The position numbers were made by a program, and so were the translations under genes. Under the pieces are notes generated by a model. The model searched no databases. It worked only from the letters and a program-made list of their open reading frames with translations, and was not told where the DNA came from. 64,000 nt of DNA, taken from assembly GCF_006345805.1 (NCBI RefSeq), contig NC_042997.1, forward strand, positions 208,196,001-208,260,000, read 5' to 3'. How positions within the stretch are numbered: position 1 is the first letter of the stretch; every line of letters begins with the position of its first letter. The stretch comes from Octopus sinensis. Lineage: Eukaryota. Below are positions 40,175-61,412 of the stretch, piece after piece.

Positions 40175-41186
40175 ATATATATATATATATATATTATATA
40201 TATATATATATAATATATATATATATACATATATATTTACATATATACATACTTACATACACGTGTGTTTACGTCCCCGTAACTTCTATCGGCAAAAGAG
40301 ACCGATAGAATAAGTACTAGGCTTACAATGAATAAGTCCTGGGGTCGATTTGCTCGACTAAAGGCGGTGTTCCAGCATGGCCGTAGTCAAATGACTGAAG
40401 CAAGTGAAAGAGTAAATAAAGTGAAAGGTTTCAGCAACTGAAGTTTACGGAAGGACGTCAAGGAAATAAAATGTCAACTGTGAAGAAATCAATAGAAAAC
40501 CGAGGACGAATACGGAATAAAAGAATTGTAAGATAAAAGTATTGTTGAATGAAAAGATAGATTGTGTTAAAATTGAGCATCGTTATAATAAAGTGAAATA
40601 TCATATCAACTGTAAGGGAATCAAAACAAAACTGATGAGGAATTCGGAATAAAAACTGGAAAGATAAAAGTAAAGTAGAATGAGAATAGAAGTCGTTGAT
40701 AAAATTGCGTCATGTAACGAAATGAAATAAATATTATTTAAGAAGAGGGAAACGTAAGGAGGTTAGTAAAGGTATTGGATTGGAAAGTGTAGTAATTCTA
40801 ACTGGAGACTTTTACAAGACATATTTCCCAATGATTAGCGGGTGAGTTATCGTGGACAACGGCAGTGAGTATTGTTTTATATAGGCAGATAAGTGAAAGG
40901 GATTTGAAGTGAGTGCAGCACTGACATAGGTCTAAGAGAAACTAAGGACCAGTTTTATAACGGATTATATATATATATAGGTGTATGTGTGTGTGAGTGT
41001 GTGTGCGTGTATATATATATATATATATATATATATATATATATATATATATATATACATATATATATATACATATATATATATATATATATATATATAT
41101 ATATATATATATATATATATATATATATATATATATATAAATCAATAAATGGTGGGGTTGTGTTGACCGCACGTGCAGAAATGATA

Positions 41187-41421
41187 GGTGAGGAAAAATT
41201 CTAAAAAGGCAGAATGCTAAATTGAAGGTAAATTTTAATAAAAATGGGTGTATGGAAAATTTTGAAAATTAAAGAAATATATAATATTTAATATATATAT
41301 AATATATAATGATATATATAATATATAATATTTTTTTAATTTTTAAAATTTTCCATACACCCATTTTTATTAAAATTTACCTTCAATTTAGCATTCTGCC
41401 TTTTATAATTTTTCTTTACCT
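41187..41421. repeat. Foldback with about 95-bp arms around an AT microsatellite
   Basis: aggtgaggaaaaattctaaaaaggcagaatgctaaattgaagg…gtatggaaaatttt pairs with aaaattttccatacaccc…gcattctgcc…tttctttacct. Confidence 0.85.
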
Positions 41422-41499
41422 ATATATATATATAATATATAATATATATATATATATATAAGTAAATAAAAGGAGTTGAACGCTGATGTTATTCAAATT

Positions 41500-41595
41500 C
41501 TTTTACTTTCGACATGTTTCGAAGACAACATTGGTTTTATTCCAAAGAAATAAACGGTGTAAAACGATGTAATCTTCTCATCAGGAAAGAAAGAG
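41500..41595 (-). ncRNA. Type I hammerhead ribozyme in a Penelope-like terminal repeat
   Basis: Minus strand ctctttctttc-CTGATGA-Gaagattacat…atgttgtcttC-GAAA-cATg-TC|-gaaagtaaaag. The core is intact. Stem I is CTTTC/GAAAG plus extension, stem II is long, and stem III is the minimal palindrome ACAUGU. Predicted GUC cleavage lies between 41511 and 41510. Confidence 0.75.
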
Positions 41596-41859
41596 TACCC
41601 ATCTTAACAGGACATTATAACAATTTTGATGACTGCATAAATGATAAACAGAACGCTATTAAGTATTTAAAAAAATAACCGTTAGTAGATTTGACATCAA
41701 AGGTAGACAATAGAGAAAGAAGGGGAAAAGAAATAATAGGTAGAGAACGAATAAAGGAGAAATATAGAGGGATATGTTGGTTGAAAAAATGTTCAAAGGC
41801 TTGGAAGTAGATTTCTCTATTGAACTAAAGTGCCAAGTGAACTAAATGTTCAGACTAAG

Positions 41860-57360: not shown

Positions 57361-58397
57361 CCGACGGGAACTGAACTCACGACCTTGTGATCGTGAGCCG
57401 AATACCCTAACAACAAACGCGCCTTCATTACATATACAGTAAATATGCATATATATATACATATATATATGTATATATATATATATATATATATATGTGT
57501 GTATATATATATATATATATATATATGTTAATAAAATAGAATATATGCATATATATAAACATATATGTACGTACCTACCTCTACATGTACATATACACGC
57601 ATATATGTGTACAGGACACCAAAAAGACGTCGAACACATAGAGAGACGAAACACATAGACACAAACCAAGGAACAAGACGAGCAAAAAAAAGGGGGGGAG
57701 AGATACAGGACAATAAGCACAACGAAAAATCCCCTTCTTCAGTCGCTAAGATTTCATCTACTAAACGTTTCGAAGGATAAAAGCGAGACGTATACTTCGA
57801 AGAAAAATTCCTTCCCGCGAAAAGCAAATCAATTAAAATTCTGAGATCTTTTCGCAGAGGGGTAAAAAAAAAAAAAGCAAGACGGTAACGACCGACCAGG
57901 GATTGGTCCAGGCCATGTCTAACTTAATAGCACCACCTGATAGGATTATTCGAATCCTGTTTAAGTCAAGTTTTGTTCAAGTAGTGAGTTCTTGTTGGGT
58001 GAGTTGTATCCAGTTTTGTTATATATATATATATATATATATATTGGTAAAAAATGGTAAGATAACAAAAGAAAGAAAGAGACCTCAATATTATGTAAAT
58101 AGAAGAATTTATCTGTAAAATAATATGTTACAATTACTCAATAGTCAAGATAAAACTCTGAGTTTTTCAGATGGCCAGATTACCGAAGAGATGGTGTTGT
58201 GGATTTCCACTTCGGAGATTTTTGTTGACTATTGAGTAATTGTAACATATTATTTTATATATATATATATATATATATATATATATATATATATATATCA
58301 ATATCAGGGTAGCAAAAAATTTAAGAGAAATCTTTTCGCCATCAGCGGTCCAGTGAGAAAGAAAAAATAGTCAACAGACTATATATAATATACATTC

Positions 58398-58787
58398 AAC
58401 AATATTAAGGAATAGCCTTGATAGGCCATTCGACCCACTAGAAAGAGCAGCTAAACTCAAACCGCTAAATAGTTGTAATTCAGAAACCAAAGGTAGATTT
58501 TGAAAATTTAGAATATATATTCTCAAGGCGTCGATGCTGTCGCCTCGTGGATATATATTTCCCTGGCTTCTTTGCTGACGAGACAGGCCAGTGGCAAATA
58601 GATTTAATTTAATGTAATTAAATCGGTTTGCCAATATGTATGTCGAAACTATGCATAGTCCAAAGATGATAAGGGTAAATGTTTTTATTTTCCTTTGGTT
58701 TCTGAATTACAACTATTTAGCGGTTTGAGTTTAGCTGCTCCTTCTAGTGGGTCGAATGGCCTATCAAGGCCATTCCTTAATATTGTT
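58398..58787. repeat. Foldback element of the same family as 39941-40174 (about 95-bp arms, about 200-bp spacer)
   Basis: Arms aacaatattaaggaatagccttgataggccattcgacccactagaaa…aaccaaagg and the reverse complement. Same upstream leader and same agggtaaatgttttt before the right arm. Confidence 0.85.
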
Positions 58788-59495
58788 ATATATATATATA
58801 TATATATATATATATATATATATATATATATATATATATATTATATATATATATATTAGCAGCAGCTGCAATAGTAGTAGTAGTAGTAGTAGTAGTAGTA
58901 GTAGTAGAAGAAGTACTGGCGGTAGTGGTGGTTTTTCTTGGGCGGTGGGGGGGCATTGTAGTTATAGTCATCGTTAACTGAGGTTGATTATAATGAAAGA
59001 TGATGATGATGATGATGATAAAGAGGAGGTAGAAAAAGAAGAAGAAAAAGCTGAAAAAGAAAGTAGAGCAAGAAAGAAATGACAAAGAGAAAGAGAGAGA
59101 GAGGGAGAGAAAGAGAAAGAAATGTAGGGAGGGAGAGAAAGAGAGGGGGGCGTGAGGGTGATGGCAGACTGGCAATTGCCTTGTCAATCATCGTTGAAAT
59201 TTGGTTCCTTTCTCGAGGAACATTCCGTTGTTGTTGTTCTGTGATTATGTAGAAGTGGACAGGAATTCTTCAAAATAGGTGAATGAAAGATGGTGAGTGG
59301 AATGGAACAGGGATATGCCAGATTAGTGCTGGAGATAAAGAGTTTTTATTAACCTGGGAACCAAAATAAACTAAAACTGACAACACCGAACAAAAGAACC
59401 TTTCTAGCAAATTCTAAGACAACCCTTCACTCTCATGTCTTTCTCATTGTCGAATGTATTGAGGTCTTTCAATATTTTTATCCCCCACCCCCCAT

Positions 59496-61412
59496 AAGGC
59501 GGCGAGCTGGCAGAAACGTTAGCACGCCGGGCGAAATGCTTAGCAGTATTTCCTCTGCAGCTACGTTCTGAGTTCAAATTCCGCAGAGGTCGAATTTGCC
59601 TTTCATCCTTTCGGGGACGATTAAATAAGTACCAGTTACGCACTGGAGTCGATATAATCGACTGAATCCGTTTATCTGTCCTTGCTTGTCCCCTCTGTGT
59701 GTGGCCCTTTGTGGGTAGTAAAGAAATAGGTATTTCGTCTGCCGTTTCGTACTGAGTTCAAATTCCGCAGAGGTCGAATTTGCCTTTCATCCTTTCGGGG
59801 ACGATTAAATAAGTACCAGTTACGCACTGGAGTCGATATAATCGACTTAATCCGTTTGTCTGTCCTTACTTGTCCCCTCTGTGTGTAGCCCTTTGTGGGT
59901 AGTAAAGAAATAGGTATTTCGTCTGCCGTTACGTTCTGAGTTCAAATTCCGCAGAGGTCGAATTTGCCTTTCATCCTTTCGGGGTCGATTAAATAAGTAC
60001 CAATTACGCACTGGAGTCCATATAATCGACTTAATCCGTTTAACTGTCCTTGCTTGTCCCCTCTGTGTGTAGCCCTTTGTGGGTAGTAAAGAAATAGGTA
60101 TTTCGTCTGCCGTTTCGTACTGAGTTCAAATTCCGCAGAGGTCGAATTTGCCTTTCATCCTTTCGGGGTCGATTAAATAAGTACCAGTTACGCACTGGAG
60201 TCGATATAATCGACTTAATCCGTTTATCTGTCCTTGCTTGTCCCCTCTGTGTGTAGCCCTTTGTGGGTAGTAAAGAAATAGGTATTTCGTCTGCCGTTTC
60301 GTACTGAGTTCAAATTCCGCAGAGGTCGAATTTGCCTTTCATCCTTTCGGGTTCGATTAAATAAGTACCAGTTACGCACTGGAGTCGATATATCGACTTA
60401 ATCCTTTATATCTGTCCTTGCTTGTCCCCTCTGTGTGTAGCCCTTTGTGGGTAGTAAAGAAATAGGTATTTCGTCTGCCGTTTCGTACTGAGTTCAAATT
60501 CCGCAGAGGTCGAATTTGCCTTTCATCCTTTCGGGTTCGATTAAATAAGTACCAGTTACGCACTGGAGTCGATATAATCGACTTAATCCGTTTATCTGTC
60601 CTTGCTTGTCCCCTCTGTGTGTAGCCCTTTGTGGGTAGTAAAGAAATAGGTATTTCGTCTGCCGTTTCGTACTGAGTTCAAATTCCGCAGAGGTCGAATT
60701 TGCCTTTCATCCTTTCGGGGTCGATTAAATAAGTACCAGTTACGCACTGGAGTCGATATAATCGACTTAATCCGTTTATCTGTCCTTGCTTGTCCCCTCT
60801 GTGTGTAGCCCTTTGTGGGTAGTAAAGAAATAGGTATTTCGTCTGCCGTTTCGTACTGAGTTCAAATTCCGCAGGGTCGATTTGCCTTTCATCCTTTCGG
60901 GTTCGATTAAATAAGTACCAGTTACGCACTGGAGTCGATATAATCGACTTAATCTCCGTTATTTTTATCTGTCCTTGCTTGTCCCCTCTGTGTGTAGCCC
61001 TTTGTGGGTAGTAAAGAAATAGGTACTTCGTCTGCCGTTTCGTACTGAGTTCAAATTCCGCAGAGGTCGAATTTGCCTTTCATCCTTTCGAGGTCGATTA
61101 AATAAGTACCAGTAACGCACTGGGGTCGATATAATCGACTTAATCATCCGTTTAACTGTCCTTGCTTGTCCCCTCTGTGTGTAGCTCTCTGTGGGTAGTA
61201 AAGAAATAGGTATTTCGTCTGCCGTTACGTACTGAGTTCAAATTCCGCAGAGGTCGACTTTGCCTTTCATCCTTTCGGGGTCGATTAAATAAGTACCAGT
61301 AACGCACTGGGGTCGATATAATCGACTTAATCCGTTTAACTGTCCTTGCTTGTCCCCTCAATGTTTAGACCCTTGTGGGCAGTAAAGAAATAAGAAACGT
61401 TAGCACGCCGGT
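59496..61412 (+). repeat. tRNA-derived SINE whose 3' 184 bp is tandemly repeated 10 times
   Basis: One head (aaggcggcgagctggcagaaacgttagcacgccgg, A-box). The B-box gagttcaaattcc recurs at 59570, 59754, 59938, 60122, 60306, 60490, 60674, 60858, 61047 and 61234. Confidence 0.95.

Follow-up and report, generated by a model that had tools for sequence, protein, structure and literature searches.

The 64-kb stretch of the Octopus sinensis genome analyzed here (contig NC_042997.1, positions 208,196,001 to 208,260,000; hereafter the window, with coordinates counted from its first base) contains short interspersed elements (SINEs) in which a body segment of about 50 nt, …CGATTAAATAAGTACCAGT…ACTGGGGTCGAT-ATA-ATCGACTTAA, precedes 3' tails of different origin. 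A first-pass annotation of this DNA had described the segment as a 'junction domain' standing before three tails and allowing SINEs to switch between clades of long interspersed elements (LINEs). We consider it quite probable that these are instead ordinary LINE-mobilized SINEs, and that the 'junction domain' corresponds to the 3' end of the body in an old octopod SINE lineage, having been inherited by descent and joined to different LINE 3' ends. The tails of the two principal families, termed here F1 (the SINE underlying a 184-bp tandem array) and F2 (a composite SINE), were copied from LINE 3' ends, and dispersed copies show a target-site duplication and 5' truncation. The window as a whole is AT-rich, dense in retroposons and interspersed with many (TA)n and (TG)n tracts.

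The shared segment in the F1 lineage

F1 is about 233 nt long overall, and comprises an RNA polymerase III (Pol III)-type head with a B-box-like motif identified by eye (GAGTTCAAATTCC), a body, and a LINE-derived tail of ~62 nt. The last ~50 nt of the body are predicted to form two adjacent hairpins (CCAGU-UACGC-ACUGG and GGUCGAU-AUA-AUCGACU in the minimum free energy [MFE] fold). The following elements of the window belong to this lineage:

59497..61411, + strand: F1 SINE with its 184-bp array (TRF period 184, 10 copies, 95% matches; unit listing; nhmmer)
51219..51308, + strand: 5'-truncated F1 copy with the second hairpin and the tail (88% identity to an array unit)
47755..47900, + strand: F4, an old, decayed F1 relative with B box, segment and a different 3' part (z=13.2 against F1)
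1..9734, - strand: 115-bp satellite of ~85 units (TRF; F1 against the unit, z=20)

The 184-bp array opens with a full-length F1 copy of 233 nt (59497-59729), whose shared segment spans ~59609-59669 and whose LINE-derived tail spans 59665-59729. This is followed by nine tandem 184-nt units lacking the first 49 nt, and the array terminates in a 19-nt piece of the F1 head (AGAAACGTTAGCACGCCGG, 61393-61411) followed by TTTT. The array is probably a single F1 insertion amplified in place; an origin by serial template switching was considered and left as weak, as the variants shared among units fit in-place duplication better. A candidate imperfect duplication of 17 nt, TCTTTCAATA(T)TTTTATC, is seen 14 nt upstream and 8 nt downstream of the array (59463-59480 and 61412-61436). 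The dispersed copy at 51219-51308 is bounded by a target-site duplication of 13-14 bp (GGTTGTATTGGATT, 51205-51218 and 51308-51321), and self-comparison revealed a further fragment of the F1 head at 48622-48669.

F1 and the 115-bp satellite have 51 nt in common at ~84% identity (z=20; score reached by 0 of 1000 shuffles), placing their sharing of the segment beyond doubt. Each satellite unit is made up of a B-box remnant of the F1 lineage, a CpG-decayed version of the segment and 39 nt of unrelated sequence (the third tail, or 'tail iii', of the first-pass annotation). The satellite is a tandemly amplified fragment of the F1 lineage together with 39 nt of other sequence. Two further copies were found in Argonauta hians (locus L003), a species of the same taxonomic order: that at 20960-20690 (- strand) has the segment, the upstream B-box region (z=17) and the first ~35 nt of an F1-type tail, and that at 1095-1350 (+ strand) has the segment and upstream B-box region (z=6) and keeps the end of an F1-type tail. 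These two copies indicate that F1 represents an old octopod SINE lineage. The upstream B-box region, besides the segment, is thus common to F1, the satellite, the relic at 47755-47900 and both Argonauta copies; given that all carriers other than F2 share this region too, common descent suffices to account for them and no special function needs to be invoked.

Exact-pattern scans for the segment gave no matches in viral contigs or in metagenome contigs, and no octopod SINEs, including the segment, were found in 42 kb of another animal genome (L006 and L007). Likewise, the open antisense reading frame of F1, used as a query for SINE-bearing contigs, had no matches, and strings of the segment searched in the full text of the literature recovered unrelated primers only.

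The composite SINE family F2

F2 is a composite SINE of ~370-400 nt. An internal (TA)n/(TG)n tract, which differs in length between copies, separates its CORE-type head from a 3' unit of 190 nt; the final ~55 nt of this unit copy a CR1-type LINE 3' end including its terminal hairpin and (TA)n. The head has the layout GGCGCAGGAGTGGCTGTGTGGTAAG...GGGTTCAATCCC...CTTGGGCAAG...GAAGCCTGTCGTA, where GGGTTCAATCCC is a B-box-like motif identified by eye. The window holds eight F2 copies or fragments, several of which are 5'-truncated:

62800..63190, - strand: full-length young F2 with head 63021-63190, internal (TA)n/(TG)n and a 186-nt 3' unit at 62800-62985
54561..54970, - strand: young F2 with a 5'-truncated head (54828-54970), a long (TA)n and the 3' unit at 54561-54740 (95% identity to 62800-63190)
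55425..55805, - strand: F2 of the old subfamily, head 55637-55805, 3' unit 55425-55604
47904..48545, + strand: F2 of the old subfamily, head 47904-48062, enlarged internal microsatellite, 3' unit 48333-48545
40263..40410, + strand: young F2, 5'-truncated, tail 40362-40410, with the best match to the F1 segment (40300-40360)
39573..39732, - strand: old F2 3' unit, truncated within the internal microsatellite
46393..46443, + strand: tail-only F2 fragment GCTCCAGCATGGCCACAGTCAAATGACTGAAACAAGTAAAGGAGTA inside an (AT)n tract
18271..18420, + strand: decayed F2 3' unit with an internal deletion, abutting the (GAT)n end of another SINE

The tail motif ...CCAGCATGGCCGCAGTCAAATGACTGAAAC occurs at 40372-40401, 46397-46426, 48503-48532, 55419-55448 (- strand) and 62798-62827 (- strand), with none expected by chance, and additional tail copies lie at 54561-54590 (- strand) and from 39573 (- strand). 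The alignment of the copies (alignment A1) separates a young from an older subfamily, the latter having ~11 more bases between hairpin and tail. The full-length young copy at 62800-63190 combines a weak version of the segment (~62847-62899) with the CR1-type tail. MFE folds predict two adjacent hairpins in the segment of F1 and F2 alike, those of F2 being GGGCUUAC...AAGUCCC and GGUCGA-UUUGC-UCGACU.

Two further features adjoin F2 copies. A near-perfect palindrome at 39941-40174 (arms of ~104 nt, 99-100% complementary, a 27-nt center and (TA)n flanks) lies between two oppositely oriented F2 copies, and looks like a foldback or miniature inverted-repeat transposable element (MITE)-like element. 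Directly 3' of the F2 copy at 40263-40410 is an A-rich 132-bp unit repeated 1.9 times (40463-40707).

LINE partners of the tails

Two LINEs of the window bear on the origin of the tails:

11586..16770, + strand: full-length L1/Tx1-type LINE, with the end of its 3' untranslated region (UTR; 16696-16768) homologous to the F1 tail (Pfam, PDB, translation, tail alignment)
45292..46280, - strand: CR1-like LINE fragment, 5'-truncated and frameshifted (translation, homologues, tail alignments)

Positions 169-230 of F1 can be aligned, with a single 11-nt gap, to the terminal 73 nt of the 3' UTR in the former element (16696-16768; z=8.1; 0 of 1000 shuffles), bearing out at the superfamily level the proposal that the tail in the 184-bp array is Tx1-like. 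The first open reading frame (ORF1, 11586-13118) of this LINE codes for a protein with a CCHC knuckle and has one in-frame stop at ~12156, while ORF2 (13128-16523) codes for an uninterrupted protein of 1131 aa with APE, reverse transcriptase (RT) and zf-RVT domains (Pfam), whose best relative of solved structure is human L1 ORF2p (4.6e-65, PDB). One distant homologue is labelled 'Transposon TX1' by its source. The ORF2 domains, the relationship to human L1 ORF2p, the CCHC knuckle and this homologue together assign the element, by its coding sequence and at the superfamily level, to the L1/Tx1 type. The element is apparently intact and young. An exact look-up of its ORF2 protein in a protein collection returned no record, and the loci of the ORF2 relatives are uninformative for the 3' end, as one (L001) stops short and the other (L002) is distant.

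The CR1-like fragment runs from a YADD box through the C-terminus of the protein (LDYCSQLWSP...LEAIQRSYTKKI...YWERLKVLKLFSLERRRERY) into the 3' UTR, with a C-terminal region that we take to be of the CR1/L2 type from its likeness to chicken CR1. Among the 216 homologues of the fragment, that from Argonauta hians is the closest named one, and full-length relatives show Exo_endo_phos and RVT_1 domains. The F2 tail matches the 3' end of the fragment (45292-45350, - strand, with (TA)n thereafter) with z between 6.7 and 8.2 (0 of 1000 shuffles), and in older F2 copies the match extends over 47 nt; thus, the reported identity of the dispersed tail with a CR1 3' end at 45308-45350 holds. The termini of the CR1-like relatives are variations on one theme, viz., a hairpin followed by (TA)n, (AACATTAA)n or (GATTCAGTAA)n. 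The Argonauta element ends in TTGGTGGTGCACCAGCATGACCACAGCCGACTCGGCTGAAACA followed by (AACATTAA)n-like repeats, and one metagenomic element (L005) has an end of the same type. A second metagenomic element (L004) ends in GGCGGTGCCCCAGCATGGCCACAGCCTGCGGGCTGAAACAGAGTAAAAGAGTA(TA)n, with the layout GGCGGTGCCCCAGCATGGCCACAG-hairpin-CTGAAACAGAGTAAAAGAGTA(TA)n, and equals the F2 end, GGCGGTGCTCCAGCATGGCCGCAGTCAAATGACTGAAACAAGTAAAGGAGTA(TA)n, from the first to the last base except in the hairpin. (TA)n thus serves as the terminal repeat in this CR1 lineage, which in turn explains the (TA)n found beside many F2 copies. The stems of the tail hairpins vary (CAGTC/GACTG, CAGCC/GGCTG, CAGCCG/CGGCTG, and GGCC-UUCG-GGCU in the window copy) with their flanks kept, a pattern that would fit a structure recognized by the reverse transcriptase, as expected from stringent-type LINEs.

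In both families the word 'junction' is an accurate description of the position of the segment, with the LINE homology starting directly 3' of the GGGGTCGA-loop-TCGACT hairpin: in F1 it begins with ATCCGT, 2-4 bases past ...ATCGACTTA, and in F2 directly past TCGACTAAA in young copies or past a short A-rich stretch in old ones. A stretch after the F2 microsatellite (GTGTGTCTG..TTTGTCCCC) was also considered as a relic of an L1/Tx1-type tail and left as a weak idea, the sequence being of low complexity.

The 39 nt of the satellite fare differently. As had been noted, no partner LINE for this sequence is found in the window: the single match elsewhere is a 19-mer at 30614, inside an RT coding region, which we rejected as a chance match. 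A dispersed SINE with this tail is likewise absent from the window, where the sequence occurs inside the 115-bp satellite only, and its designation as a SINE tail is therefore not upheld; it may be a tail or a flank captured when the array formed.

Similarity of the F2 segment to that of F1

The proposal of one domain before three tails holds for F1 and the satellite; for F2 the evidence is suggestive, and consists of two short blocks, CGAT..AATAAGTAC and GGGGTCGAT.T..TCGACT.AA, whose spacing differs by 9-11 nt from that in F1. A composite pattern, AATAAGTAC-N(8-30)-GGGGTCGATNNNNTCGACT, occurs four times in the window (two F1 array units and two F2 copies) with none expected. Comparison of the two consensus sequences gave z between 2.0 and 5.7, with the score being reached by 56 of 1000 shuffles under stringent scoring and by 0-27 of 1000 under three other schemes. 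For single F2 copies z against F1 ranges from 3.7 to 8.8 with cheap gap extension and from 1.3 to 8.0 with stringent scoring. We also built a profile of the segment from F1, the satellite, F4 and one Argonauta copy, and searched with it the window and L003, with those copies masked. The F2 copies ranked at the top (E=0.0015, 0.079, 0.94 and 1.4), and outside SINEs the search returned noise only; as the F2 copies are not independent of each other, this counts as one match at the level of the family. Taken together, these comparisons suggest that the F2 match probably reflects true homology, with F2 carrying at most a short, diverged version of the segment.

It could be argued that the likeness arose by chance or by convergence of two short motifs, in which case the domain would belong to the F1 lineage only and precede two tails at most. 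The stringent consensus comparison, which falls short of significance, is in line with this, as are the recovery of a single F2 copy (E=0.014) when one F1 sequence is used as the nhmmer query, and the existence of alternative registers, GGGGTCGAT being present twice in F1. Against it, positions 122-170 of F1 align to one and the same F2 region in four of the six copies and overlap it in a fifth, F2 copies head the profile ranking, and the older F2 copies are nearer to F1 in block 1 as well as in the bases leading into block 2 (AAGTACCAG, GTGCTG..GTCGAT). We accordingly regard a chance origin as unlikely, if deserving of serious consideration. A more extensive relationship, with the whole F2 3' unit being a diverged F1-type SINE, was examined through its colinear weak matches (z=2.3) and left as weak.

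Mobilization, tail acquisition and alternative explanations

Copied LINE tails, 5' truncation, one target-site duplication and the insertion of a tail by itself into an (AT)n tract are all directly seen in the window. From these we infer a conventional life cycle, wherein the SINE RNA would be transcribed from the head by Pol III, and the reverse transcriptase of the partner LINE would recognize the LINE-derived tail and insert the copy by target-primed reverse transcription, with which the 5' truncations and the 13-14 bp target-site duplication are consistent. A new tail might be acquired by either of two routes: the enzyme could switch template from a LINE 3' end to the SINE RNA, or an element could land in the microsatellite tail of another and the two then be transcribed together by read-through. 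The internal (TA)n of F2, situated directly after the hairpin-plus-GTA end of the head module, fits the latter route.

Several observations weigh against this explanation as we have framed it. Exact copies of the partner LINEs are absent from the window, the hairpin of the CR1 fragment differs from that of F2, and an indel of 11 nt distinguishes the L1/Tx1-type LINE from the F1 tail. ARAGORN detected no tRNA in the whole window or in either head, and Rfam none even on short stretches (its output being microsatellite-driven miRNA noise only); as no tRNA model matches, the Pol III origin rests on the box-like motifs seen by eye. The two-block likeness of F2, found at one position in all copies and ranked first by the profile, exceeds what pure descent within the F1 lineage predicts, and may reflect some transfer of a module between lineages or an older common origin. 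Finally, the survey covers the 64-kb window and 21 kb of Argonauta sequence (L003).

The view closest to the original proposal is that the segment is a functional conserved central domain and a point of tail exchange, i.e., a hotspot of recombination or template switching that moves the body between LINE clades. In F1 as in F2, the LINE homology does start within a few bases past the GGGGTCGA-loop-TCGACT hairpin, the stem of this hairpin is the best-kept part between the two families, the segment is retained in Argonauta, and F2 differs in head and tail with a similar segment. However, different tails follow the segment both in F1 versus F2 and in F1 versus the satellite unit, whereas a different head precedes it in F2 only; this sole comparison across heads has a marginal similarity (p from 0.056 to <0.001 depending on the scoring), and descent is enough for every other carrier since these share the upstream region. 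Moreover, the stem changes among F2 copies, as read from alignment A1, are CpG transitions that yield wobble pairs or breaks rather than compensatory pairs. Thus, the modular construction of these SINEs and their L1/Tx1- and CR1-type tails stand, but a role of the segment as a swapping device appears improbable.

It is about equally improbable that the segment is a LINE fossil, either the 3' end of an earlier partner or a piece of a LINE UTR, to which newer tails were added 3': its terminus, a hairpin followed by TTAA or TAAA, and the A run after it in older F2 copies (TCGACTAAAAAAAAATTC), which resembles an old 3' terminus, speak for this, as does the documented derivation of SINE bodies from LINEs (PMC5786205), but no segment-bearing LINE was found in the window, L003 or the other loci, and the profile yields noise outside SINEs.

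Accordingly, we prefer inheritance of the segment within an ordinary LINE-mobilized lineage. A bolder version of the module idea would see in the segment an uncatalogued octopod-wide unit passed between unrelated lineages (the F1 type and the CORE-headed F2), which marks the attachment of L1/Tx1-type, CR1-type and third LINE tails, with insertion of CR1-type sequence into (TA)n building the composites; we give this little credence.

CORE-type heads and further SINEs

A second and clearer module boundary lies directly after the F2-type head module, ...GTGAGTGGATTTGGTAGAC.GAAAC.GAAAGAAGCC.GTCG. Downstream of it are found (TA)n and the 3' unit in F2, another body in a SINE at 10545-10866, and yet another in two SINEs from Argonauta. 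The former SINE is:

10545..10866, + strand: SINE with an F2-type (CORE) head and a different body (head 80% identical to that of F2)

It is cut by a further F2-type head at 10860-10989. An RTE-like tail had been assigned to it at 10840-10866, after the junction domain; the junction segment is absent from this SINE, and hence it does not furnish another tail on that segment. The terminal 24 nt of this SINE (GGTTGGCAACATGAAGGGCATCCA) bear a likeness, too weak for BLAST, to an internal stretch of another SINE family with copies ending in (GAT)n (17990-18262, 33427-33677 and 36723-36965). The Argonauta SINEs (L003, 1460-1640 and 16370-16190 on the - strand) have a CORE-type head as in F2 (~79%) and a different body (GACTGGCGGAGGA.TGACATCC...), from which it follows that the head module predates the split of Octopus and Argonauta.

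The hallmark of CORE-SINEs is quoted as CCTTGGG (PMC5786205). By this motif the F2-type head belongs to this class, since (C/T)CTTGGGCAAG directly follows its B box; the form TCTTGGGCAAG occurs at 10898, 54909 (- strand) and 63102 (- strand), and older copies of the head have the version CCTTGGGC. As a lead only, the head is colinear with a MIR consensus (z=3.6).

A candidate V-SINE-like sequence, GGTTGGCGTTAGGAAGGGCATCCAGCTGTAGAAAC, was noticed at 10843-10866 and 18100-18135. It resembles what we take to be the conserved part of the zebrafish V-SINE DANA (GGAAGGGCATCC.GCTG.GTAAAAC). If this likeness is true, the window would hold V-type SINEs too, and both CORE and V would be present in the SINE at 10545.

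Comparison with known SINE systems

The CORE, V, Deu/Nin, Ceph, Meta, MESC and Snail superfamilies are each defined by a central domain that is found with variable heads and tails, and for CORE, V, Meta and Snail SINEs both this architecture and its interpretation are in print (PMC4758252, PMC4824008, PMC11481361). In particular, the CORE and V domains have been proposed to aid the exchange of 3' ends with LINEs (as presented in PMC4758252, citing Gilbert and Labuda, 2000 and Ogiwara, 2002, and in PMC4824008), MetaSINEs are thought to survive by changing partner LINEs (PMC4824008), and bivalve HCD-SINEs have several LINE partners (PMC11481361). SINE bodies can also derive from LINEs, including pieces of LINE UTRs (Kojima, 2018; PMC5786205). 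The idea of a domain at which tails are exchanged is therefore not new (PMC4758252, PMC4824008), and is applied here to another genome.

With MetaSINEs, V-SINEs and bivalve HCD-SINEs the present elements have in common a shared body segment followed by tails from different LINE clades; however, the domains of those systems span classes or phyla and many heads, whereas the segment described here is found in Octopoda and, securely, in one lineage. A close parallel is offered by the Snail-domain SINEs Lsa_3 to Lsa_6 of Littorina, where reciprocal combinations of heads and tails surround one domain (PMC4758252): here too, a single genome holds different head and tail combinations built on one central segment, but all four reciprocal combinations are realized there, as against two or three here, of which one is doubtful.

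The octopus OR1 and OR2 are CORE-SINEs according to Ohshima and Okada, 1994 and Gilbert and Labuda, 1999, as cited in PMC4824008 and PMC4758252. A B box followed by (C/T)CTTGGGCAAG, matching CCTTGGG, is present in the head of F2 as well as in that of the SINE at 10545, and the occurrence of one head module on different bodies and tails in Octopus and Argonauta fits OR1/OR2. The junction segment is distinct from the CORE domain: in F2 it is situated ~250 nt closer to the 3' end, and the SINE at 10545, though CORE-headed, lacks it. Ceph-SINEs, described from squids and cuttlefish (Akasaki, 2010, re-analyzed in PMC5786205) and reported for octopuses too (PMC7708342), are comparable in being cephalopod SINEs that combine a head and a conserved central part with tails that vary. 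A piece of the Ceph domain, CCTCCAGCTATGGGTTAAATAGT (PMC5786205), searched as 20 nt (CCAGCTATGGGTTAAATAGT) of the 23-mer, had no matches with three or fewer mismatches in the window, a result that pertains to this one short piece.

Tandem amplification of SINE parts, as in the 115-, 184- and 167-bp arrays of the window (for the last see below), is known from SINE-derived satellites of limpets (PcH-sat, from a Nin-SINE; PMC11121367) and squamates (PMC10702118), from which the present case differs in having three such arrays, derived from two SINE lineages, within 64 kb.

Octopod SINEs thus conform to a plan already known, in which a head, a conserved body and a LINE-derived tail follow one another, and the result adds little beyond annotation. 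It links F1 to an L1/Tx1-type and F2 to a CR1-type LINE, and CR1-type elements ending in (TA)n help to explain the many (TA)n tracts and the composite SINEs of this genome. Were unrelated SINE lineages truly to share the segment as a module, this would add a further example to the question of why SINE bodies are conserved, rather than being a new kind of system.

Other features of the window

The third SINE-derived array (32826-33677) has four copies of a 167-bp unit from the 5' part of another SINE family, and is followed by a fuller copy with a (GAT)n end (33427-33677). A C-terminal fragment of an RTE-type LINE (...DREVWRSMVNSIV...) occupies ~50300-51060 and has the terminus ...AACAATGATGATGA, with an F1 fragment inserted ~150 nt downstream. 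Lastly, an open reading frame at 51886-52776 codes for pogo/Tc5-type DNA-binding domains (HTH_Tnp_Tc5, CENP-B_N) and is probably a remnant of a DNA transposon.

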